From NCBI GenBank assembly GCA_964035545.1, contig CAXIUT010000220.1:1-18046 (forward strand): a DNA stretch of 18,046 bases. The letters are read 5' to 3'. This DNA is from Bugula neritina (taxonomy: Eukaryota > Animalia > Bryozoa). The notes beneath the pieces were generated by a model that saw only the letters and a program-made list of their open reading frames with translations, was not told the DNA's origin and did no database searches. The first letter of the stretch is position 1; every line of letters starts with the position of its first letter. A program made the position numbers and the translations under genes. Below are positions 1 to 18,046 of this stretch, piece by piece.

Positions 1-75
1 CCCAACCCCAACCCCAACCCCAACCCCAACCCCAACCCCAACCCCAACCCCAACCCCAACCCCAACCCCAACCCC
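1..75 (-). repeat. Left telomere, C-strand (CCCCAA)n; reads (GGGGTT)12 GGG on the minus strand
   Basis: Perfect C4A2 hexamer repeats from base 1 to 75, then unique AT-rich sequence. G4T2 is the Tetrahymena-type ciliate telomere repeat. Confidence 0.97.
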
Positions 76-148
76 TTATTTTTATTAATCAAATATCTTC
101 AATAAATAAATTTTATACACAAGTTATAGTAATTAATAACTAATAGGG

Positions 149-3100
149 ATGTCGATTCCTTCAGAGTAGCAACTTAAAATTAGAATATTCAACTAACAAG
201 TTGAAGATTCTTTAATTTACTATAGTATAGCCAGAAAATAACAAAAAAGTTTATCCATCTTTAAAAATAATAGACTTCTCATCTTTGATTACACCCAAGC
301 TAAAATATTTTACATAAACTACAATAATAACCTACCTTTCAAACAACATCTGCCACAACCTAAAAACTAATTTGCTTTTCTCAATAGAACCACCATCAGA
401 CATTCACCGAACACCAATTATATAGAATTCGTGTTTTACTTCAATAAATAAAGTCAATTCTGGAACTTTTAATTCGCTAGTAACTAACTAGCTGATTAAT
501 GGATAAGATTATTTGATGCAAAAAGACTTTAACTAGAATAAAAACCACCATCGAAAGTCATAGTCAGCAGTCCTGTCTATGATCTTCCAAAAGTTTAAGA
601 ATAAAATGCCAATGATATAGTTAAATAATCACAAAGAGATATTCCCAATGATTAATCAAGACTTATCAGTCAAGTCATTCTTTCCAAAAGCAGAATATCA
701 CAAAATATCGAACCATAAAAACAATAGGTATCTGTTGTAAGGAGTCAAAATGTCAATTCTAAAGATTGGAATCTCAGATTTTATAACAATAGAGATATAG
801 AAACCCTTTTCGAGTTCAGAAGAGTAGCAGCTGATGCCTTTTTTGTCTCTTTTAAAAAAGATATCTCCAACAATAAATAATCAAGAGTTTATCAAAACGA
901 TAACTTGATAATAAAAATCGCTAATAGATATACAAGCTAAGCTAAAAAGTTAAAAAACTAATATAGAAACTATCATTTTATTATGTAAGCAACTAACAAA
1001 CATTTCGTAGTCGGAGTACCTCTAGCCTGTCTAATTGAGTTCTAAAGTGTAGTCGGATTAGTAAAAGCTCAATTACCAGACAGAGCCAAACAAATCAGTT
1101 ACGATAATGCCCTCAAAGAACAGTTTAATTAGCTCTAAAGGTATACTAGAATAAAAAATAAAGTACTTTAAAAATCTGTAATTTTCAACTTAGCATAAAA
1201 TTATGATCCTAGAAAACCATTTCTCATGTACCTAGATGAACTCACTCAATATTTGCCTCTTAACTTATAATTTCCAAATGAGCAAACTTTGATAAGACCT
1301 GAATATATGCTTGATTAGGTTGATTATTTTATTTTTAGTAACTATCCTGATAAAAATGGGAAAGAATATTCAAGATAGTTGAGATAACTCAGTCTAAAAG
1401 TAACATAAAAAATAAAATTATTTAGTAATAACTTCTACTCCTTGTCTTTTCCTATCTGTAGAATCACATAGCTCAAAAATATAATGCATTAGGCCGGTTT
1501 AAATTTTAAGTACCTTCCCTATGTTTATTCTTACTGTAAAAACAAAGAAGTTAAAAGGTACATATATAGCGCAATGACAGCTAAAATTGTTAAAGACTAC
1601 ATTTTTGAAAGCATAATCAAGACAAAAGAGTAGAACAATGAAGTTAGGTTTTAAAATGGAGTAGAATAATCGATATCTCTTCTTTTAGCTGGTGATAACA
1701 AAAAGAGTAATGAGCTTTGGAAAGAAATATCTTTGATATTCAAAAAGAAATACAACCTTACTCTTTATAATAAAGAACTTTTGCCTGGATTCTTTCTCAA
1801 TTCAGTGATGGAACTTATTCCAGCTACCTATGATATCATCAAACTTGATATAAAAAAGAGAATATTTCAATAAAATAAGATAATATAGCCTGGATTTGTT
1901 AAAATTTTACAACCCAAAATAAAAACTTTTGATAGATTTTTACCATAACATCTATAAAAATTAAAAAATGATGCTAAAACATATACCAAATCAGAATAAG
2001 TCAGCAATGCAATTAAGACATAACTATTTTAAAGAAATTCGTCTAATAAAAATAGTTACTAATTTGGTAATAATGATGAATGGATGGTTTAATATTTAAG
2101 TCTCTATTATCCTCCTTAGTAAATAGCCTCAGAAAATTAATAAAAATATCCTTATCTATTCGATAGAATCAATTAGTAACCTCCATCTAACTTTTCACTA
2201 AATTTGACTAAAAATTATCTTTAGTGGTGCAATAAAAAATAAAATACATAAGAATTCAATAAAATATTCAACATATCAATGAAAATAGCTGATTATTGGC
2301 TTGATTAAGTCCATCCCATGAGAAGTGATCTCCTACAAATACTATCAGACTACTATTCTATCATAGGATTAAACGATCAAATGTTAAAATATATGAAGAA
2401 TTCAGTTAATTTGTCAATAAAGTTTTGGGGAAATGAAGCACATCAAACAGGAATCAAGTACTACTAGTTAGCAGACAGGTATCTTAGAGCAGGTAAAAAG
2501 AAATAAGCTTAATAGTATTTTATAAAAGCAAAAATAAATATGGAACTAAATAAAAGCAAAACAAATAAACTTGGACTTACCCACATCAAACTGTCATCAA
2601 TATATTTATCAGATCTTTAATACTAGAAAGCAACTAAATAGGCAAGATAGTCAATTACTGCATTTGAAGATTACTAGAGGAGGATAAAAAGTTTTGGAAT
2701 ATTCAACTAACCTTATAAAATAAAAGCTTTTTAGCTGCTATCAAGGATATTCTAGATATGTGACCAAAGAACCAACTATAAAGAGTTGGCTTTGAGTTGT
2801 GCTAAAAAGTTTAACTCAACTAGAAACAAAGAGGTCTATGAACAAATGATCAGAATTTGTTTGGCTGCATCAATATACAAATCAACTGTTGAAAGGTGTG
2901 AGTCTTTCTTAAAACTGATCCTTAACCTCTAACAATAAAGTAGATAAAACTAAACACTTCAACCGATTGATGAGCTGATGAAAAAAAGTGAAGATATTAT
3001 TGTGATGGAAAGGTTTATGTATAAATTTTAGTTTCTTGAAAGATCAATCGTTTAGATCAGTAATAGAAAAAAGCATCAGCCTAACTAAGATAATCGTTAG

Positions 3101-3190
3101 TTCGCTAATATACTTAAAAATATTGTAGTTATTTTAGGAGTTTAGTATATTCAAGGAGTCATAGAATAAAAATTAAGTTATGGACCATGA
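149..3190 (+). CDS. 1013-aa protein with an N-terminal PH-like domain, a CLU (clustered-mitochondria)-like central domain and C-terminal TPR-like repeats
   Basis: ATG at 149 opens a frame with no TGA until 3188-3190 (TAA/TAG read as sense). Motifs seen with UAR=E: FWNFEFASNELADEWIRLF (PH-type terminal helix with Trp); DWNLRF, KKLKNEYRN, PLACLIEF..VGLVKAQLP, LIRPEY, IMHEAGLNFKYL and SNELWKEI (resembling CLU-family motifs in order); HP-containing and YYELADRY..GKKKEAEEYFIKA TPR-like helices. Domain names are by motif recognition, not a database search. Confidence 0.85.
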
Positions 3191-3302
3191 TTATGTTCAC
3201 TTATTTATTTAGTTTTTTTTTTTAAAATTTTTAGATTTACAAACTTTAGAATATTCAAGAGTATTTATAAATCATATTAAATAATACTTCGATTTCTGAA
3301 AG

Positions 3303-4517
3303 ATGAAAATACGAAGGGTGCTATAAAAGAAACAAGAAAATCAGATATTATTGAATGAAAAAGTCAAAAGATCTATTTCTGTTCCCAATTGTACCAAATA
3401 TTAGCTAAAGAATTTAATGAGTAGAAATAAACAATAACTTAATACTAGATCTAAATCTTATAGTTCTTCATTATGTGATAAAAATAAAAATGAGTGGTTC
3501 AATATGATTAAAAAAAGTTCCAATTTTTGTCATGTTCTCAGACCAAGAACAGCTACTAGTAAATAAAATTGGAAAAGTAATAAAAAGAAACTATTTCTAA
3601 AAGAATAAAAAAGATCTATAAAATAATATTAGGTCGATAATTTAGTTAACAAAATTAATAGTTAATAATTTGGATTTAAAACTATCAATAAATAGTTAAA
3701 GTTATTGATAAAATAGGGTGAAAGTTTATCTTCTAATGAAAATTATAATTTATTTTAAAATTCTATCTTAAATAAAGTAAATTTTGGATAGTTAAATAAT
3801 GTTAAAGAAGATTTTAGATAATTTTTAACTTTAATATAAAAATATTTTTAAATAAAAGAACAAAAAAACATAAAAAAATAAAGAAAAATAACTTTTGGTT
3901 TACAAAATTAGATAAGTAATTTACAAATCAAAATAACTAAACAAAAATATGAATTAGATCAAAATTAAAAATATATTAAATATCTTAGTTTAAAATTAGA
4001 TGAGGCATAAAAATAGATAAGTTCAATCAAAGATAAATTAATGATCTTTAAGCAATAAAAATTAAAAGAAAATACTTTATGGGATAACATTTAACTAATA
4101 GAAAAATCTAAAAAATGTTAGAGATAATAATATGACTTGTAAAAGAATCATAATATAAATAGAACGTGTGGCTTATCTTTATCTAGTTTGATTTAGAAGT
4201 ATAAAAAGTAATTAAGATAGATTAAAAAGCAAAATTAATAGTTGTTAGAAGTTTTAGCTGTTTTAAATCATCAAGGAGTCAACATAGAAAGTGCATATCA
4301 TTCAATATTGTAAGGAAGAAACGATATTTCTGATGATTTTAGCGAGTAAAGTTTGATTTATCAACTCATGTAAAAATCAAGAATAATAAAACAATAACCA
4401 AATAGTTCTTGCTCACTTAATTGCTAATCCTTTAGTAGAGTTAGTATCAATTTATAAAATAGTAATTAAGAAATAATAATTGAAAAATTAAAAGAGGAAC
4501 AAAAATATTTAAAATGA
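3303..4517 (+). CDS. 404-aa hypothetical K/E-rich coiled-coil protein
   Basis: ATG 3303 to TGA 4515-4517 with no internal TGA, much longer than expected by chance. Heptad-like segments such as KKELREIKKQNEELLEVL. No family recognised. Confidence 0.7.
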
Positions 4518-5318
4518 TTTGAAATCAAGATAAAAAAGATGATCTTAATAATTTTATAATTTATAATATTAGTATTTTCGATATAATACAACCAAATCAG
4601 AGTTTATCTGATAAAATAAATTGGATTTTATTGTTTAAAATATCTTTTTCTATGTTCTTTTCACAGTAAACTGCTAATTTATTAATTTTTAAACATTTAT
4701 TGTTTTGAAAATAATATTAAAATGCAGTCATAGTAAAAAAGATAAAATGAATAATGACCTATTTTTCGATAATAGCACAAGAAAAGGAGAGATAAAAAAG
4801 AAATAAGTCTATATTATAGATTTGGTTTCACAAAAACAACCTCAAGAGAATACATTTATGTCCAAATTTGATAAAAAATAAGAATTAACAACTGAGTTAG
4901 AACAATAATTCTTGAAGAAATAGTGAGATCTACTTGAATAAAGTCTAAAAAGGTTAAAAGAAGGTAAATTATTAATAAGTGACCAGCATCTATTCAATTA
5001 AAAAAACAATAAATAAGCTAAATAAAATACTATAAGAGATGAAAACAACTTTATTTAATTATTTACTTTATTTTAAACAAAACATTAGGCCCTTAGATTA
5101 TTTTTATTTTAGCTATTTTTCTCTAAAGACTACTATTTTTGTTATTTTATTAATAAAATATAAGATATCGAAATTTAAATGTCAAATTTCTAAAGATTTT
5201 ATTGAGAATAAGTCAAAAAGAATTGTTATTAAATGAATAAATAGAAGATATATTTTAGATAGTTTTATTAGAATTATTATCAACAAGACTATATAGTTAT
5301 AGATTTTTATTAAAATAT

Positions 5319-5393
5319 GGGGTTGGGGTTGGGGTTGGGGTTGGGGTTGGGGTTGGGGTTGGGGTTGGGGTTGGGGTTGGGGTTGGGGTTGGG
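5319..5393 (+). repeat. Internal telomeric tract 1: (GGGGTT)12 GGG, followed by TAAG
   Basis: Directly visible, 75 nt, perfect repeats, with unique sequence on both sides. Confidence 0.97.
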
Positions 5394-5527
5394 TAAGGTT
5401 GCTGATAATTTTCTTAGGTCTTAGTTTTATTTAGATGAAAATTATATCATTTTAATTTGATGTTTAATTCTGATGCTATTTTATCAAGAGAATAAGATAC
5501 GACCACAACTTGATAATTAATTAGTTT

Positions 5528-8500
5528 ATGAAGCAATTCTTGCTCTTCACGTCTCTCGTAACCCTATTACTTCTCTGGCAGCCTGTGCTAGCATGTAACC
5601 CAGGTGAATATGATGACGGCGGGGTCTGTACTCCTTGCGCCACCAATACATTTGCTCCAACAGGCAACTAAACTCGATGCGCAAAATGCTTTAACTGTCT
5701 TGACTGCAATCCCACTAACGGAGACTGCACTATTTGTCCTGCAGGGTCTTAACCCGCTGCTGATGACTGTTCTGTCTGCCAAGCTCAAACATATTCCGAT
5801 GGCACCCGTCCATGCGCATAATGTCCAGGATGTTATACCTGTAACTCTTTAAATGGTTCATGCAGCAGCTGTAAAAAAGGATTTGAACTAAGAGGATAGG
5901 CTTGCTTCCCTTGTGCGAATGGAACTTATTCGACTGGAGGTGAGGGTTTATGTCTGTAATGTACAGGATGCACAGCATGTGATGCTGAAAATGGAATGTG
6001 TACTTCTTGTAAACCAGGATTTGGTCTATCATTTGGCTAATGTATAGCATGTTCGACTGGAACCTACTCACCTGGAGGTACTGGCGATTGTATCGCATGT
6101 GCTGGATGTTCTGCTTGCGTTTCAACAACAGGAGTTTGTTCAAGCTGTTTGGCTGGTTATGGATTTAGCAATGGAACTTGTGCTGCCTGTGCCCAAAATA
6201 CTTACTCAACAGGAGGAATAGGACAATGTATTCCTTGTACAGGATGTTCTAGTTGTGCTTCAGCCACTGGAGTTTGTTCCAGTTGTATTGCTGGGTATGG
6301 ATTCCAGTCAAACGGGACATGTACTTTTTGTTCTTAAAGAACATTTTCTCCAGGAGGAACCTAACAATGTCAAACCTGCCCTGGATGTGCTGATTGTGCT
6401 CCTTAAAATGGAAACTGTTCAACTTGTCTAGCAGGTTATGGATATCTAAATCAAAAATGTACAGCCTGCCCTAGTGGATAATATTCTCCTGGAGGAACTG
6501 TAGTATGTCAGAACTGCATTGGATGTGATTAATGTATTAGTACTTCTGGAAAATGTTCAACTTGTTTCGCTGGATACGGACTAATAAATGGAACATGTGT
6601 ATCATGTCCTGAAGGTAGCTACTCCCCTGGAGGAACTGGCTTGTGTCTTGATTGTTTAGGTTGTACACAATGTATATCTACAACTGGAGTCTGCACCTAG
6701 TGCAATCCAGGATACGGATTCTAATCGAATGGAACTTGTCTTTCATGTCCAAAAGGCACCTTTTCCTTGGGAGGAACTCAACCATGCCAATCATGCCCTG
6801 GATGCTCTGACTGTACTTCAATCAATGGAAAGTGCACAGCCTGTCAAGCTGGCTTTGGATTGAACAATGAATCATGCACAATGTGTCAACCTGGAACTTT
6901 CTCAAGATAAGGAAATGTTGGCCCCTGCCTAAACTGCAGTGCAGGATGTGATAGTTGTGCTGCTACTTCTGGTGATTGCAGCAGCTGTAAAGCAGCTTTC
7001 GGATTAGTGAACGATAGCTGTATAGCTTGCGCTAATCAAACTTATTCAACAGGAGGAACTGGAGAATGTCAATAATGTGTTGGCTGTTCAGCTTGTACAG
7101 CAAGTGACGGAGTGTGTTCAACTTGTAAAGCAGGTTTTGGTTATTAGATCAATGGTTCATGTACAACTTGTCCTAATGGAACTTATTCTACTGGAGGCAC
7201 TACTACTTGTCAAAATTGTATTGGATGTGATACTTGTGACTCAACTTCTGGATCATGTGAGACTTGTAATCCTGGTTTTGGACTTAAAAATGGTACTTGC
7301 ATTGTTTGTTCAAATGGAACCTACAGTCCTGGTGGAAATAATACATGCGTTGCTTGTGTGGGATGTGTTAGTTGTGCTCCTTCTTCAGGAGTCTGTACGG
7401 AATGTATTGCTGGATATGGATTCTAAGCTACTGGAATATGTACTGCTTGCTCACAAGGTAAATTCTCCCCAGGAGGTACCCAGCAGTGTCAATCATGTCC
7501 TGGCTGTTCTATGTGCTCTTCAGTAAATGGAAGTTGCACAGCCTGTCAAGCTGGCTTTGGACTCAATAATAATTCTTGCACATCATGCCCAAGTGGTACT
7601 TTTTCAAGATAAGGAAGCACAGGTCCTTGTCAGAACTGTAGTTCAGGATGCAATACTTGTGCAGCAACTTCTGGTGACTGTCTGAGTTGTAAAGCAGCCT
7701 TTGGATTAGTGAATAGTAGTTGCATTGCTTGTGCTAATCAAACATATTCGACAGGAGGAACTGGATAATGCCAAGAATGTGTTGGTTGTTCAGCTTGCAC
7801 AGCTAGTAGTGGAGTGTGTTCTGGTTGCAAAGCAGGGTTTGGTTATGAAAATAATAGTTCTTGTTTAAGTTGTGCGAATGGAACTTATTCAACTGGAGGC
7901 ACTCAACAATGTATTAGTTGTGTTGGATGCAACTAATGTATTTCTACATCTGGATCTTGTGCGACATGCTTTGCGGGATTTGGTCTTGTCAATGGTTTTT
8001 GTGTTGGATGTTAATAAAACACTTATAGTACTGGAGGAAATGGAACATGTCAGCCTTGTGTGGGATGTTTGACCTGTCTACCTCAATCAGGCGTCTGCTC
8101 AGGCTGCAATCCAGGCTTTGGTTTCAATAGTGGACAGTGTACGGCTTGTTAATCTCAGCACTATTCTACTGGAGGAAACTCTACTTGTAAACAATGTCTG
8201 GGATGTTCAGCTTGCTCACAAATAAATGGAGCTTGTTCAGGATGTCTAGCTGGATATAATCTTATCAACAGTGCTTGTCAGGCTTGCTAGCAGGGTTCTT
8301 ATAGTCCTGATGGAGCAGCTTGTAGAATATGTGTGGGATGTGAAGCCTGTTTGGCTACCACTGGTGTCTGTTCTTCTTGCTTGGCTGGTTTTGGATTAAC
8401 TAATGGATCTTGTCAAGCATGCCCTGCTAAAACTTTCTCAAGAGCAGGAAGTTCATCTGTCTGTCAAAACTGTACTGGATGTTAGGCTTGTGGACAGGCT

Positions 8501-11500
8501 ACTGGAGAATGTTCTTCTTGTTCAGCTGGTTATGGTCTTTATAATACAACTTGTACTAGTTGCGCTAACCCTAGTTTTTCATAAGGAGGTACTGGTTAAT
8601 GTAAAAATTGTTTGGGCTGCTCAACTTGCAATAATATCAATGGTTCTTGTTCTGGATGTGTTGCTGGTTTCTAACTGAATGGTACAAACTGTGACCTATG
8701 TAAGCCTGGAACTTATTCTACAGGTAATTCTTCTTGTATGGACTGTAATGTAAACTGTTCATAGTGTTCAGTTTCAAGTGGAGCCTGTCTGGTTTGTAAG
8801 AGAGGTTTCCAGCCTAATGGTATGAGTTGTAGTACTTGCCCTGTACATACATTTTCTGATGATGGCAGATATTGTGAGGAGTGTTTGAAGAACTGTGCTA
8901 CATGTAGTGTTGAGACAGGTTTTTGTCTTACTTGTGTTGAAGGAAGTCAACTATAAAACAACGTCACTTGCAATAATTGTTCAGTGAGAACTTATTCTCC
9001 TGGAGGTAATATTTTGTGTAAAGATTGCGATGTTCACTGTGCTAGTTGTGACTCAGTTAATGGCAGTTGCTTTACCTGTTTTGCTGGATTTGTTCCTAAC
9101 ATCACCAAATGTGATTTATGTCCTGATGGAACTTATTCTATTGGTGTTGGAGATTGCTAAATATGCAACGCTATCTGTGTTACTTGTAATGTAACTAACG
9201 GCTACTGTACTACCTGTGCTGCAGGAACCCAACCTAATACTTCTAGTTGTAGTGATTGTCCTACTGATACTTTCAGTGCTGATGGAAAGGCTTGTCAAGT
9301 TTGTGATAGTTGTTTGACCTGCAACAGTACAACTGGAGCCTGTTTATCTTGTGTAAGTGGAAAAGGACTCAATGATACAAAATGTAGTCTTTGCAAGACA
9401 AATCAATTTACTAACAGTAGTTCATATAAGTGTTAAAATTGTGATAGCAGTTGTGCTTCGTGTAGTGGTAGCAAAAACAATCAATGTACTAGTTGTGATT
9501 AAGACTGGGGTTTTAAAAATAATACCTGTACTATTTGCCCTAATGGAACTACTTCTGATGGTTTGCGTCCTTGTGAGCAATGCAACACATCTAACTGCAA
9601 AGCCTGTACTCAAAATGATGTCTGTCAAGTTTGTGACTTTGACTTTGTTTTACTTAACAACTCTGAATGTGGTTTTACTTGTGACTTGACTATCAAAGGG
9701 TGTGAACTATGTCAGATCTAGAGTTAGTGTTATATGTGCCAACCTAAATACATTGATGATGGTAAGGGAGGTTGCGTTTTTTGTGCTATAAGTAGCTGTC
9801 TGAACTGTTCAGCTGATAATCAATGCAGTTCGTGTAGTGATGGTTTGGTTCCATCTACGACTAAAGATTCTTGTATCAGTTGTTTTGACTAAAACTGTGT
9901 GAGTTGCGGCAGATCGAATTACTGTGATGTCTGTGTTAAAGACTATGGATCAATAAATGGTTTTTGTTACCTTTGTGGAGTTATAAATTGCAAAATATGT
10001 GACAATACAAACACTTCTTTAAAATGTTCTGCTTGCCAGAATAACTATGTTCTTGACATAACTCAAAACAAATGCTTTGCTAACTGTTCAATTAATAACT
10101 GTTCGGTCTGCAATACACCCAACGTATGCTTTAGCTGTGCTGCTAACTTTACCCTCAACCCTAGCAATAATACTTGTGTCCCTAACTGTGGAATCAATAA
10201 TTGTGTCATGTGCAGTGGAACTACTTGTTCAGGTTGCCTAACTGGGTATATCTTACTAGGATCTTCATGTATTTTAAGATGCAATATTGCTAACTGTGTC
10301 CAATGTATTACTAATGCCTTTGATGTGTGTCAGCAATGTGTAACTGGATTCCAACTTTCTTCTGATAAAACTGTCTGTGGAACTTGTAATATTCTTAACT
10401 GTATTACTTGTAACCGTAAAAATCAATGTGATCGTTGCTCTGGAGACTTGATCTATCAGAGCGGACAGTGTCTCTCTTGCAAAGTTGATAACTGTCAGGT
10501 CTGTAGTTCCAATGATACTTGCAGCATCTGTTATGATGGATATAGTTTAAATAATACTGCCTCACTAGATAGTCAGTGCATGACTTGTCTTAATCCTTGT
10601 GCAAATTGTTATCCTGATGGAAGTTGTATTACTTGTGTTTCTCCCTACAGTCCAGTAACTTTAACTCAAGGAAGTTCATGCTTCTTCTGCTTCGATCCTC
10701 ATTGTGCCTCTTGCTCTAGTTCTTCTGAAGGAGCCTGTACATCATGTACTTCACCCTATTCTTTGAAAAGTGGAGCTTGTGTGGTTCAATGTATTGAAGG
10801 ATGTCTGATTTGCACAGATTAAACTACATGTCTACTCTGTTCCAGTTACTACTACTTAGATTTTAATACCACTACCTGCCTTCGATGCCCCAATATTCCT
10901 GCCTGCCAAAGTTGCAGCGCTTCTGATCCAACTGTATGCAATCAATGCAACCCTGGATATTATATGGTGAATAGTACTTGTATAGCATGTCCAGCTTATT
11001 GTGCTACTTGCTCATCAGCTACTAAGTGTCTTTCTTTGGTTCAATAAACAGGCTACACCCTTATGATGATAAATCAAACTAGTAACTATCCAACTCTCTG
11101 TGATCCAGGCTGTGAGATCTGTTCTAATGCCAATCCAACTATCTGTACTGACTGCTATGACGGATACTATCTGACTTCTCAAAGCTACTGCATGACATGT
11201 AGAATTGGACATTCTTGTGCTACATGTTCCTTAACCAATCCCTCTATCTGCCTTACCTGTTTCCGAGGATACTTCTTAAAAGACTCAATCTGTGTTTCAT
11301 GCACTTATCCTTGTACTTCATGTGAAGGCCAGTAGGCAGAGAAATGTACTGCTTGTGCTATAGATTACACCTTAACATCAAATAATACCTGCTTATTGAG
11401 TTCAAGTCTTCGTAGTTCTTATGGTAATGTCACTTAAAATTGTGCTAACTCTATTCTCACGATTGTTGCTAATAGTAGTACTGAACTTGATTGTTCCCTT

Positions 11501-12774
11501 TGTCTGCAAGGTTATGCCTTTACTGCTGCAGGTTGTGTTCCTTGCATTTGGGGATGTAGAACTTGTAACCCTAAAATTCTTACTCAATGTTACACATGTT
11601 TGGCAGGTTTCTTCTTGAACAGTACAAATGTTTGCTAGCCTTGTACAACTCACTGTTAAAGTTGTGTTGATTTTGGTTGCCTTCGTTGTTCAGGAGGCTA
11701 TATGTTGAATAGATAAACTTTCAAGTGTTAACTTTTATGTTTAGCTCCTTGTGCTACTTGTTCATCATAGTCACCAGCTTTGTGCAGTTCATGTTTGAGT
11801 GGATATAAATTGAGTGGTAGTCGATGTTTAGCTGATACTTCTTGCAATAATGATAATTAGAATGCCTGTCTGGTTTGTCCCTATGGATATTCAATCAAAA
11901 TCGTTCAAAATAATGATACAAGATTATCTCAGCAATGTCTCACCTGTGTGACTGAAAATTGTGCCAGATGCAATACTGATAATCTTACTCAATGCTATAC
12001 TTGCAAAAATAGCTACTATCTTTTGGACAACAGATGTATCTCCTGTAAAATTGGCTGTGCCTTATGTGTCAATAATATCACCTGCACTAGTTGCGCCATG
12101 GGATACATTCCTACTCAAAGTGGAAAATCAGTTGGCAACTTGGCCTCAGGTATTTTGAATTGCATTGTTTGTGATAATCCCTGTGCAACTTGTTTAGGAA
12201 GTGCCAGTACATGTACTTCTTGCCTTGAAGGATATCAACTTAAAGGAAGTATTTGTGTTAGTAACTTCAACTATCAGGTTAAAATAGTATTCAATGTAAC
12301 TCTTCCTCAGTTTGAGAATAACTGTCTCAATTTCTTGAACCAGGTAGCCGAAGCAGCTAGAATTAGTATCAAACGCATCCTTATGTTAAGCATTAAACTT
12401 GGTTCTGTTGATGTTTAGATGTTGATTACTTCTGAAACCTCTGCTGCATCTTCTGAATCTATTCAATCAGAGAACAATCTTAAGGACTTATTTGCTGAAG
12501 GAGGATCAATAGCTAATATGGGAGTTGTCAGCAATTCTATAACTTATAATGGAGGCAACAATCATCCTGACACTCCTGACGATGATGATGAAGGAATATC
12601 TACTACTACAATAATTATTTTAGCTGTGGTGATTCCATTGGTCATAATACGTACTTTTAAATTAATTTAGTGATAATCATTGCGATTGTGATATATAGAA
12701 GAAAGAAGAAGCAGAGTGCTGCTAAGTAGTGGGATCCTGATCGTAAGGAGGAGAAAGAAAAACTTGTTGAGTGA
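5528..12774 (+). CDS. ~2408-aa cysteine-rich type-I membrane surface protein, join(5528..12650,12671..12774): signal peptide, 6-Cys TYS-x-GG repeats, furin-like CxxC repeats, SEA-like domain, TM helix, short charged tail
   Basis: Starts MKQFLLFTSLVTLLLLWQPVLA (signal peptide). One frame has no TGA for over 7 kb, and track ORFs 6149, 9899, 11063, 11948 and 12419 are fragments of it split at TAA/TAG. Periodic Cys and many NxS/T sequons. SIKLGSVDV motif near 12389-12415. The TM segment IIILAVVIPLVII|LIIIAIVIY-RRKKK is completed only after removing the 20-nt intron. TGA at 12772-12774. Confidence 0.92.
5594..9590 (+). repeat. Coding tandem array of ~45-47-aa six-cysteine repeats (CxxCxxGTYSxGGxxxCxxCxGCxxCxxxxGxCxxCxxGY/FG)
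   Basis: Recurrent acttattc..ggagga and ggatgt motifs about every 140 nt. Boundaries are approximate. Confidence 0.85.
12651..12670 (+). other. 20-nt spliceosomal intron GTACTTTTAAATTAATTTAG
   Basis: GT..AG ends and AT-rich. Retention gives TGA at 12671. Removal joins the two halves of the TM helix and adds an RRKKK stop-transfer sequence. Confidence 0.88.
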
Positions 12775-13576
12775 TTATTTCATCAGCAAATTACATATTA
12801 ATCATAAATATTAATAACTATCATCATAAAGTGTCATTAAAATAAATAATCAAGCATAATCAAGATAATAATCTTCAAAATGACATAATTGGATAGTTTT
12901 TACAAAAAAAGTAAATAATGAAAATATCATATTAACATATTAGATAATTATTTTGAATTTAAATTAAATCCAAGCAATTCTCTTATTGAATACTTTTATA
13001 GATAATAACTAAGAATTGATAATGTAGTACTTTCGAGCAAGAAAAATAGACATAGTCTTGCAAAACTATTGCCAATAATTTAACAGTTACAATTTTAAAT
13101 TTAGTTCAAATTAATAAAATTAAGCTTAACAATAGGTTTGTTAAAAGAAAATGTTGAAAATAAACTAAATAATATAAAGATATTTAAATTATATTTTTAC
13201 AATAAGTATTTTATTCATAATACTATCTAATTTCATATATTCTTTATATTTAATCTTAAATCATTAGTGTGTTAAAAAATCTTAGTGATCAACACCTTTA
13301 CTTTCCTTTAAAGATATCCTTGAAAATTATTACCATTTTGAAGAATAACATAAAATAAATGTTTTCACTGCTTTTCTAATCAAATCTTTCTTACTTTTTC
13401 AATCACATCTCATAATGTCTAACCCAAATACATTGTCTCAAATGCTATTTAGTAAGTATAAACTTCATAGATGGTTTCTATTGGGCTAAATCTTTCCCAT
13501 AGGAATGTTTTAAGAGTCTAATTGAAACTTTATTCAATAAAAGTGACCAATATAAATCTTGTTTTGGATATTAAAT

Positions 13577-16500
13577 ATGTTATTAACTTCACCAAAAATG
13601 GATTAATCGTTTAACTGGACATGCCTCTTCATGAAAATGATATTAATAGAGTCTTAGATGATATTTTTTTGTTAGAGATATCCAACTAAATTTATCTTTC
13701 TTGAAGATTTTCTGAGTAAGAGTAAAAAAAAAAACAGTAGAAATTAATAATATGACTTTTTAATGCGGAAGGAAGTATTAGAAAATAAAAGCACTTTTTT
13801 TTTAATCGGGGGTATTGAATATTTTGATTAGTTTACTATAATATTATCAATCATAATATTCTTTATTATATTTACTTAGAATAAAAGAATCTTTAAAAAT
13901 CAATCTAAAACTTTTTTATTGTTTAAAAAGGAAAGTATTTTACAAAGGACTATTTAGCAAATAAATAATTAGAAAATAAAAGTTAATCTTGATAGTATTT
14001 TTTCCTTGTTTTTAGATCTTTATGATCTTTACAATAGCTCAAGTATTTAGAATACAAAATTATACTTTTAATTGACTTATAAAATTTTATTTTTCTACAA
14101 TATTAATAAAAGTAAATTCATTAAAAGACTTCTTTTTAATAAACTTTCAATTTTTGTAGCAAGGTTTAAAATATAGAATCCTAAAAATAAAAAGGTAAAG
14201 TTTAACTTTTTATTTTTTATTTTTAATGCTAATTATCATTAATTATAATCCCACTTCATAGTTATGGAAGATTAAAAAAGGAAAGACAATCATTTAGATT
14301 CGGCATAGCAACTTGAACAAACAAAGGAAACTTCTTCATAGAGTTAGTTTTTAGAATAGTATAAAGAAAAAACAAAAATATACCAAAAGTTATTAATAAT
14401 GTAGAGTATCAGCAAAATGAAGGAAACATTTTATAAATAAAAAGTTTTCATAGATGATAGTTAGAATTTTAATTAATAGATATAATTAACAATAGTTTAA
14501 AAATCAATTAATAAAGAAGTAGTTGTCATATTAGGGGTTGGGGTTGGGGTTGGGGTTGGGGTTGGGGTTGGGGTTGGGGTTGGGGTTGGGGTTGGGGTTG
14601 GGGGGGTTGGGTAAGAAGGTTAGAATGGAATGGTTTATTGTGGAACTTTAAAAAAAGAGAAGATAGCTATGAAATGCATTCCTATTCGATCATAGTCAAC
14701 TAGATGTAGAGCTATTAAAGAATGGTTTTTGCTGAAAATAGGATCAATAGCTGAGGTTGGTCCTAGAATATAACCTTACTTTGGCTTTGATATTCTGATG
14801 TTCAAAGAATGTTGTTAATTTGCAACATAGATATGTTTACCTTGTTAGTGGTCTCAATATAATTAAAATACTATCTACTGGAATTTGGTTGTAATGCATT
14901 CTTTACATTTGGTTCATCTTGATATTAAGCCTTAGAACATTATGTACAGTCCGAAATATCAAAAACCTGTGTTTATTGACTTTGGATTATCAAGTTTAAT
15001 AAAATAGAATATTGGTTTTAAGACTTTATCTGATTTCAGAGGCAGCATTAATATTTGTAGTCAATAGATGGGCGAGTGTTTGATTCTAGGTAAATCTAAG
15101 AAGATAGACCTATATCAAAATGATTTAGTTTGCCTTTAAAAAAGTATAGATTTTCTAAAATAAAGCTTTAAAAATCTTTAGTTATTTAAACAGTAAAATA
15201 AAGAATCCATAAATAATTTAAAGGAATTGTTTAGTCTCAGGTTGTATTAACTCAAATATTATTTATTTAGAAATTAATTTGATTTATTTACAAAATAGTT
15301 ATCTACAGTAATATAGATTTAGAATGGAGACTTTTATCGAATTAGATCGTTATAATTTTTAGTTGAACTAATTCCTCATCCAAAATTACATAGAATATTT
15401 TTGAAATATGTGACTTAAAAAGAAAGTGATTCTTCTTAGATTATAAGATTAAAAATAGCCTATTAAATGAGTAGCAAATATCTTTTTACTGTCTAAATCT
15501 TAAAAGACCAATAAAAATACAACTTATTTTCAAAATATTGTGAAGAATATTTTAAAGATGCAATTGACTTAAAAGATCAGTTAAAAGCCAGAAATAAATT
15601 GATTCCTTAATTAATCAAACAAAAATAAATGATTCAAAAATTATCTTTTCAAAAATATATTAAAATCTACATGGAATACATGAGTTATACTAACAACATC
15701 TTCAAAGTGACAGCTCTTCAAAGATCTGAAGCAGCTGCTGTATACTATTCTCTATTCATTGATTCATAAGTTCCTTCTGACATTACAGGAAGAAAGTTAG
15801 TTGAATAAACTATAAGGCATATTCTCAAATGGATTCTTTAGAATTATATTTTAAAAAATAGTAATTATTTATTTGCTATACTAGCTTTTAAAGTTCATGA
15901 TTTTTTGTCTATATTAGATATTGGAACAATTGAATAGCAGATAAATTGGCTAGAATCAATTTATAATCATTAAGCTCTTCCCATTTAAACTAAAGCTTAT
16001 TTCATAAGTAGAGTTCTTTAAACTAATTAGTTAAATTTGTTTAGAATTAGAGGAAAAAATAATACTAGAAATAAAATCAAAAAAATCAATAGGTGGGTTA
16101 CTTCCAAATTTAACTAATTTTAATTCTATACAAATAAATTTTTAAGAAAAAAATAAATAAAGTAAAAGTAATGTGAAAAAAATACAAATAATAATATTTA
16201 TGTTAAGAATTTTTATGATGAATTTGGATATTAAATATAAAAATATTATCAACTAGTAATAATTGACTTAGATTCAAAAAATATCCCTTAATAAATTAAT
16301 CTATTTAGTCAACTCAATTATAAAAATTAGAATTCCAAATTTTATTACTTCACACTTCATTTATACACTTATCTTAGATAAAGATAGAAAAATATTTCGA
16401 CTTGTTCAAAAATAATCAATATTTTTAAATCTAATTTAGCTGATTAATAACTCTTTTAATAAGAATTTATTTTTTCAACTAATCTAGGATATTTTAAAGC

Positions 16501-16585
16501 CATTTCTTTTAAGATCATATAAATCTAAAAAATAATGTTAAATATTGTGTTAAAAATTATATAATTTTTTATAGTAAATCCCTGA
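13577..16585 (+). CDS. Divergent non-RD protein kinase domain (~14520-15140) within a long ORF; interrupted in frame by telomeric tract 2; start and 3' exon structure uncertain
   Basis: Frame open from 13526 to TGA 16583-16585, first ATG at 13577 (alternatives include 13763 and 14264). Kinase motifs: VIL[tract]EEGENGMVY, IAMK, AIKEW (alphaC Glu), FATEIC (hinge), VHLDIKPENIMY, FIDFGLS, RGSINICSQEM, DLYQNDLVCL. Confidence 0.8.
14534..14611 (+). repeat. Internal telomeric tract 2: (GGGGTT)11 GGG GGGGTT GGG, followed by TAAG
   Basis: Directly visible, 78 nt, 12 TT units, one G7 run at 14600-14606. Confidence 0.97.
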
Positions 16586-17885
16586 AAAAGATTATATTAT
16601 GATTTAATTCTTTTTGAAGGATATATTCTAAGAAATTTATTACAAAATTTGTTTATAATAATAAGAATTTAACATCTTCTTTTCAAAATAGAGTGTCTTA
16701 AATAAGATAGTGAAAAGTTTAGTAAGTTCTTATGAAGAGATATTAAAGGATACATAAGGTTGGCATTAATGCCTTTAATAAAATATTATAAGAATTATCA
16801 ATAGAATCACATTCTTATCTTTTTCATAAGAATATAATGCAATTTAAATATTTTCAAATTAATCATTTATTAATTAAATAAAATGTCAAAATTGTCGCAT
16901 TGTTCTTCAATTTAGTATTAAATTTAAATAAATTAAAGAATAATTCGATAACTTATATAACTTAATATGTATAAAAGATAATAAAGATTAGTCTTAATAG
17001 GAAAAATCTATAAAAAAAATATTTAATTTATCTGATAGTTTTAATTAATCTCTTATTGAGCAAAATTGTTAAAATTCTGATAAAATAACCCTTTTATTTT
17101 ATTGTTCGCGTTTATGTTCATTAGCTTGTTGTCTTAATTAGGGCTATGAATCAAAGTATCATGGAATACTAAACTATTATCGAATGACTCTTAAGTATAA
17201 TCGAATACAAACTTATCTCAACCAAAATATAAGAGAGAATAACCTTATATTCTACATGACTTGTTTTCTTCTCTGGAAAACAAATAAAAAATCACTTTTA
17301 GTATTTATTTTTAAAATTGTTAAAACTGTCTAATTAAATTATAACTAACCTTATGGAAATAATATTATTTATTACTTTACTTAATTCTTCCTAAATTTTA
17401 GTCAATAAGAATTATTCTAATTATTTCTAAATATTAAATCATAAAACTAATTAAAATAAAATCGAATAAACTGTGTAGCTATTATTTATGTTTTACTTTA
17501 TATTTTTTTCAATAATCATTAAAAATAAAAATTAGTAATAAAATAAACTTTAAAATTATTCAATAAACTTTATTTTTCTTTGAAAAGATAGTTATTAATT
17601 AAAATTGGTTATAAATTTTATCAAGATAGCCTTTGTGTTTTATAAAAACTTAAATAAATGAAAAATAGATCTGGATAATTCTTAGAAAAGAAGAATATCA
17701 TGATTGAACAAAAAAAAGTAAAAAGAAAATTAAGATATTGTAGAAATAGATTGATAAAATTATTTATAAATATGGGAAGAGAAGGTTAAAAATTGATGAA
17801 GAAAAGAAAGAAGGATAGTTTAAAAGATATTTTAGAATAAAAGCTGTCAAAAATTAAAAGATTAAAATATTGGAAGTAGTATTGA
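16575..17885 (+). CDS. Long +1-frame ORF: probable 3' exon of the kinase gene, or a separate hypothetical gene
   Basis: This frame has no TGA from 15711 to 17883-17885 (about 725 codons), and the last ~435 codons lie beyond the kinase-frame stop. The 5' boundary is uncertain (candidate acceptor TTTTTTATAG ending 16574; ATG at 16599). Confidence 0.6.
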
Positions 17886-17970: not shown

Positions 17971-18046
17971 GGGGTTGGGGTTGGGGTTGGGGTTGGGTTG
18001 GGGTTGGGGGTTGGGGGTTGGGGTTGGGGTTGGGGTTGGGGTTGGG
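17971..18046 (+). repeat. Right telomere (GGGGTT)n: 12 TT units plus GGG, with one G3 and two G5 variant units
   Basis: Terminal G4T2 repeats in the correct orientation for a right chromosome end. Confidence 0.97.

Follow-up and report, generated by a model that had tools for sequence, protein, structure and literature searches.

Can a chromosome carry a telomere in the middle of a protein-coding gene and still keep its reading frame open? The question is raised by an 18,046-nt stretch of DNA (hereafter, the window) that forms one entire contig (C229) of the Bugula neritina genome assembly GCA_964035545.1. On its forward strand, at 14534-14611, lies a 78-nt tract of G4T2 repeats, composed of 70 nt of perfect hexamer repeat and then an irregular end, whose length and end phase are those of the contig termini. 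The frame that runs through the tract (coordinate mod 3 = 2) is free of TGA for 329 codons on the left and 657 codons on the right, and it reads the repeats as (Gly-Val)n, with EEGENGMVYCGTLKKEKIAMK directly after. An earlier note, made from the sequence alone, had described a tract inside an open frame with kinase motifs downstream, all of which the contig does contain, and had interpreted it as a precise in-frame insertion in the glycine-rich loop of a protein kinase.

The assembly (216 Mb in 321 contigs) mixes the DNA of a host and a ciliate. The host accounts for the large contigs (C1-C9), which use the standard code, and the ciliate for about 310 small contigs of 17-100 kb, in which TAA and TAG encode Glu and the telomeres are G4T2. 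We checked the code in the SDHA gene of another contig of the same ciliate (C231), where the invariant Glu residues of the TEGCRGEGG and CGEA motifs (two positions) are encoded by TAA and TAG. The Glu of the kinase HRDxKPEN motif is likewise a UAR codon. Our initial assumption that UAR specifies Gln was dropped after the SDHA check, and the Glu reading of TAA and TAG in the earlier note proved right. The nuclear code of the ciliate is the peritrich code, and the kinase-like gene was translated accordingly in genetic code table 30 (UAR = Glu). Because it combines UAR = Glu with G4T2 telomeres, we refer to the organism as a peritrich-type ciliate; the window is one of its macronuclear chromosomes, co-assembled with the host.

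The chromosome is capped at its left end by a C4A2 telomere (1-75) and at its right end by a G4T2 telomere (17971-18046), and it contains a second internal G4T2 tract on the forward strand (5319-5393). This other tract is intergenic, about 80 nt upstream of a 2399-codon open reading frame (5474-12670, forward strand); it has the same orientation as the tract at 14534-14611 and stops in the ..TTGGG phase. The segment 1-5393 starts with C4A2 and finishes with a full-length G4T2 tract, and looks like one complete 5.4-kb short chromosome copy that served as the first read of the layout. The 2399-codon frame differs in composition (37-45% G+C) from the remainder of the contig (16-30% G+C). For a 307-aa stop-free piece of it (9899-10819) we found no homologues, and an rDNA minichromosome as the source of the GC-rich part (5.5-12.5 kb) was rejected because a search with Rfam detected no RNA family in the window.

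The gene that holds the tract at 14534-14611 has its 5' part at 14264-14533 (forward strand), with in-frame ATG codons at 14264 and 14417, and a kinase-like catalytic region at 14612-15200 on the same strand. In the table 30 translation, the catalytic region comprises a remnant of the Gly loop, IAMK with its Lys (14663-14674), HLDIKPEN (14915-14938) and DFG (14978-14986). The last two correspond to the catalytic loop HRDxKxxN and the DFG of PF00069, and they have the usual spacing. Since the catalytic loop and DFG are matched (26.8 bits) by a local profile built from six kinases found in this ciliate, of which five are encoded at loci with PF00069 matches at E ~1e-67 or better, we conclude that the gene is a divergent kinase-like gene. 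Further, blastp aligned the catalytic region to one PF00069-matched kinase locus (E 2.7e-5). The PF00069 scoring took in 129 candidates of the assembly, a set to which the window's kinase-like gene did not belong, and Pfam searches with its stop-free pieces, only 22-25 aa long, returned no match. No close kinase paralogues were found within about 230 kb of ciliate DNA, and searches of the assembly for an empty allele or a second copy of either flank returned self-hits only.

The two flanks of the tract contribute unequally to the kinase profile. The right flank reads x-E-G-E-N-G-M-V-Y ... IAMK, and the part that belongs to the Gly loop aligns at -2.5 bits; the first Gly position of the loop and the strand that precedes it lie beneath the tract. 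The left flank adds nothing to the score, which is 27.9 bits with or without it, and so gives no backing to the claim that removal of the tract restores the kinase spacing. That claim, of an exact L-G-x-G-x-x-G spacing, also falters on the residues themselves. Clean removal of the tract yields L-E-E-G-E-N-G, which lacks the first Gly, and the ILG variant obtains its Gly from the tract's own first GGG and drops three non-telomeric bases.

Sequence of the locus is present in three sequencing runs, which we refer to as X1, X2 and X3. Of 395 words sampled from window positions 12600-16600, run X1 contains a share of 0.98, as expected if the only losses are at about 68 word positions, those that cross the junctions and the irregular end. 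It is its identity to the window elsewhere that leads us to regard X1 as probably the source sample. The evidence from this run consists of assembled contigs built from 31-letter words (k=31). One of them (10209 nt, depth 12.6) shows no differences from the window wherever the two align, which includes the 5' part of the kinase-like gene as far as the repeat mask. Window positions 12600-14525 correspond to 7049-8974 of the X1 contig and positions 14614-15760 to 9063-10209, both without differences. Between these pieces, window positions 14526-14613 and X1 positions 8975-9062 (88 letters in each) do not align. The ends of the aligned pieces are the edges of the repeat mask, at which the alignments were trimmed; the contig nevertheless aligns straight through the other masked repeat (14181-14241) but not over the tract. 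In a k=31 contig each word is used once, and 70 nt of perfect hexamer repeat cannot occur in it. Together with the missing alignment, this property leads us to infer that, at the site of the tract, about 78 nt of the main DNA form are non-repeat sequence. Indirect evidence thus shows the telomere to occupy the place of 78 nt of ordinary gene sequence.

The same X1 contig carries both flanks, which makes them true neighbours. Here the earlier note was correct in regarding the flanks as colinear parts of one locus and in dismissing a random end-to-end fusion; the fusion of unrelated chromosomes, which we had considered as well, was rejected on this ground. As an assembled sequence, the X1 contig does not present left flank, repeat and right flank as one molecule. 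It passes the site without a branch, so the telomere-capped form is rare at position 14533. Metagenome contigs, scanned twice for exact patterns taken from the flanks, gave no match.

Two other runs contain pieces of the locus. In run X2, a second sample of the study that produced X1, window positions 14125-14427 are represented by two forms, one identical to the window and the other about 6% different, a divergence that may separate two strains of the ciliate or two of its alleles. Run X3, which has a different organism label and comes from a different study, contains short contigs of the locus that cover window positions 14742-15008 and other short stretches; one of them is identical over 267 nt. 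The same ciliate seems, therefore, to occur with another host or in another sample.

The X1 contig bears directly on whether the tract was added to the gene or took the place of part of it. An artefact of pure insertion, in which one read contributed its telomeric tail between two reads and no sequence was lost, would be undone by deletion of the tract. Such a deletion produces a plausible strand-plus-loop sequence (VVVIL-EEGENGMVY), and the evidence for pasted read ends that is seen across the genome (described below) fits this explanation equally well. However, there are 88 letters, not 10, between the anchor points in the X1 contig, a count that also contradicts the earlier statement of no apparent sequence loss, and the left flank adds no profile score. 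Together with the shortened N-terminus that pure insertion would leave in SDHA (see below), these observations make it very unlikely. The main conclusion of the earlier note, a precise in-frame insertion without loss, is unsupported for the same reason: the tract stands in place of an equal length of non-repeat sequence.

Internal tracts are not confined to the window, and were found in many other ciliate contigs. We read C4A2 at the window's own start and at all 18 further contig starts sampled, and G4T2 at both of the contig ends that were read. Across the whole assembly, a 36-nt repeat pattern had 5054 matches on the forward strand and 2716 on the reverse. At about 90 nt apiece, the telomeres at the starts of some 310 contigs account for nearly all of the reverse count, and the forward excess is thus attributable to internal tracts, of which we estimate some 300, nearly all on the printed strand. 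The sample of internal tracts has the same bias: 16 tracts in 10 contigs are of the G type, versus 2 of the C type in a single contig (C41), and orientation is uniform inside every sampled contig. In contig C41 (positions 1-10000 read), the two C4A2-type tracts (7162-7241 and 7717-7829) are 476 nt apart, and the first adjoins a long (TAAA)n run. In contig C15, an internal tract lies at 6730-6817 as counted within the stretch 20001-30000, directly ahead of letters that read as N.

The orientation of the tracts weighs on the possibility of a real interstitial telomere, that is, of a break healed by telomerase whose capped end was then rejoined, in frame, in some or all of the macronuclear copies. 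Several features of the locus agree with this scenario: the tract stands in the deposited contig in frame with the sequence on either side, its flanks are genuine neighbours, and the repeat, like that of true chromosome ends, is immediately preceded by an A. Yet the orientation of a real interstitial telomeric sequence is expected to be independent of the output strand, and we observed 16 against 2. A telomere-to-telomere chromosome looks alike on both strands, so a bias toward the printed strand is computational rather than biological, and suggests an origin in the layout or stitching of reads. Neither this bias nor the uniform orientation in each contig has a biological cause, and healed breaks should yield C4A2 to the right and G4T2 to the left with equal frequency. 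Furthermore, the X1 contig, at a depth of 12.6, keeps a stretch of equal length that does not align to the tract, the junction words are apparently missing from run X1, and the end phase of the tract is the same as that of read termini. We therefore consider a real interstitial telomere very unlikely. The strand bias and the shared end phase also argue against the first model of the earlier note, a break that was healed and religated. It is similarly hard to believe that a minority of macronuclear copies truly carries the tract between colinear halves of the kinase gene by healing and rejoining. If it were true, the process would have operated at hundreds of ciliate sites and always on one strand per chromosome.

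Other internal telomeric repeats offer points of comparison. Vertebrate interstitial telomeric sequences derive from the action of telomerase during double-strand-break repair and, as insertions fixed in the germline, appear in every read. The tract of the window resembles them in that the repeat stands between colinear flanks, but the main DNA form lacks it and the pattern follows the strand of the assembler. Among oligohymenophorean ciliates, Tel-1 C4A2 repeats are germline-limited and flank transposon-like elements with conserved adjacent sequence; in 1985 Cherry and Blackburn reportedly described such internal C4A2 repeats in the Tetrahymena micronucleus, at the ends of Tel-1 elements. The tracts studied here share with them the G4T2/C4A2 repeats, a non-terminal position and an oligohymenophorean ciliate as their source. 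Unlike the Tel-1 repeats, they are in telomere-capped somatic contigs, and no conserved adjacent sequence was present at 32 junctions. A germline (Tel-1-like) origin was rejected on these two grounds.

How the internal tracts begin and end brings them close to the termini of contigs. Their length is 64-113 nt (mean 85), versus 56-106 nt (mean 88) for contig termini. Among the termini, 20 of 22 stop at ..GGGGTTGGG (the ..TTGGG phase), and 11 of 13 internal tracts, a set that includes the SDHA tract of contig C231, stop in that same phase and are followed by a base other than G. The two exceptions are as expected where the next true base is G. At internal sites and contig ends alike, the repeat starts after an A with GGGG or TGGGG. 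A search for a conserved motif within 100 nt inside the 32 junctions (20 terminal and 12 internal) found none; the sole conserved position is the A at -1, which results partly from the definition of the tract edge. As expected of internal telomere-addition sites, then, the internal tracts have full length and begin and end like true chromosome ends. Position 14533, the last base ahead of the repeat, is the probable telomere-addition site of a shortened chromosome copy.

A purely technical origin would dispense with the shortened copy, the telomere-tailed read being instead a chimera of the library or of the consensus. The telomere-capped form must indeed be rare at this site, as the k=31 contig of run X1 is unbranched, and a one-base slip in an A-run of SDHA is among the signs that the consensus of the ciliate contigs has low coverage. 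We nonetheless find it highly unlikely, because the internal tracts start like true ends and have the full length and phase of telomeres, and because work on other ciliates has thoroughly documented both internal telomere addition and nested chromosome isoforms (PMC6937825). By reasoning on primer polarity, too, the 3' ends of the telomeric G-strand point outward, and chimeras formed through telomere homology could not connect a telomere with the interior of a chromosome. It is by this reasoning only that we rejected a PCR or ligation chimera via telomere homology, in which outward-pointing G-strand 3' ends could not prime into the chromosome body.

Among the tracts examined, the kinase tract and one other are the only ones with open frames on both sides. 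SDHA on contig C231 is a second gene with a tract. Its 94-nt tract (18141-18234) begins 7 codons past an ATG at 18120, and the frames on either side differ (0 on the left, 2 on the right), so tracts are not generally in frame. From the ATG to the FAD-binding motif there are about 50 codons if the tract is counted and about 18 if it is not. In mitochondrial SDHA, the FAD-binding motif is usually about 50 codons from the start. The distance weakly favours replacement over insertion, as pure insertion would put the FAD motif no more than about 18 residues from the N-terminus. The change of frame means either that the replaced length was inexact or that the ATG at 18120 is not the true start.

Two further irregularities were noted in SDHA. 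Near 18642-18661 of contig C231, a change of frame is mended by removal of a 20-nt GTAAG..CAG stretch, which restores GK..QAYRTCAVADRTGH; judged by its sequence, this stretch is a putative tiny intron, of a kind known from Paramecium. Near 19695-19705, the frame slips in a run of five A, and an extra A restores ..AAVYRTEKTLQEGADKI. The slip probably reflects a homopolymer error in a consensus of low coverage.

Tiny introns of this sort are the one point of contact with the proposal that the tract is genuine but taken out at a later stage, whether as an intron or as an internal eliminated sequence: the ciliate has them, and the 20-nt GTAAG..CAG stretch fits the frame change in SDHA. At the kinase-like gene, however, the GT..AG pairs that surround the tract span 79 or 87 nt, and they break the frame or remove the Gly loop. 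A telomere-capped contig represents, in addition, somatic DNA whose processing is complete, and the main DNA form lacks the hexamer tract at this site. These results make removal of the tract at the DNA or RNA level, which the earlier note had listed as its third model, extremely improbable.

Taken together, the co-oriented tracts, the strand bias, the terminus-like lengths, the shared end phase and the X1 contig lead us to conclude that the tract at 14534-14611 is most likely an assembly artefact, in which the telomeric read end of a shortened chromosome copy overwrote 78 bases of the gene. At least one sequenced molecule would have been a shorter copy of the chromosome that ended at 14533 with a telomere of about 78 nt. 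The assembler would have tolerated the short unmatched telomeric tail as an overhang and kept it in the contig, and the next read would then have been appended at an extrapolated coordinate. Overwriting of equal length would preserve the reading frame across the tract and leave the total length unchanged. The pattern is not specific to this gene, and the evidence for a pasted end includes the lack of profile score in the left flank and an SDHA distance that fits replacement. Neither a molecule with an interstitial tract nor a kinase with a poly-Gly-Val loop need exist. The second model of the earlier note, in which the assembler merged capped and uncut copies, is the best fit to these data, with the amendment that the tract replaces gene sequence instead of being inserted in it.

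Overlap-layout assemblers of the miniasm type accept short unaligned read ends and extrapolate positions. Such tolerance of overhangs predicts a pasted end of overhang length, an unchanged total length, a uniform orientation in each contig and a bias toward the output strand. Two observations count against a pasted read end in this exact form. The prefix layout of miniasm/hifiasm-type assemblers would paste C4A2 ahead of the chromosome body, the opposite of the dominant arrangement of G4T2 after the body, which fits a stitcher that appends suffixes better than a prefix-based layout. The out-of-frame tract of SDHA, for its part, counts against an exact replacement.

The shortened copies that would have supplied the pasted ends have precedents. 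Ciliates are well known to add telomeres at internal sites and to have nested chromosome isoforms, the shorter of which assembly pipelines tend to fold into the longer chromosome (PMC6937825). As in those isoforms, the shorter copies proposed here end internally with full telomeres. The peritrich-type contigs differ in that the merging left the telomere inside the contig rather than hidden, and, unlike the nanochromosomes of spirotrichs, they belong to an oligohymenophorean ciliate with chromosomes of 17-100 kb. A literature search for nested telomere-capped copies in a peritrich-type macronucleus found no description of them.

What the locus contains, then, is most likely not a biological in-frame insertion of a telomere, a reading that is most likely wrong; a kinase with a poly-Gly-Val loop and a programmed interstitial telomere are both unsupported. 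The consequences extend to the rest of the ciliate contigs. At about 300 places, 60-110 nt of true sequence have probably been overwritten by telomere, and some of these places are inside genes, such as the kinase-like gene and SDHA, where the gene models would be wrong as a result. The pasted ends would also map where shorter telomere-capped copies end in a peritrich-type macronucleus. That nested chromosome isoforms are widespread in this ciliate, with telomere addition inside genes, is a proposition for which we see the chances as about evenly balanced. The pattern thus calls for caution in the use of the assembly, and it hints that a peritrich-type ciliate has chromosome isoforms.
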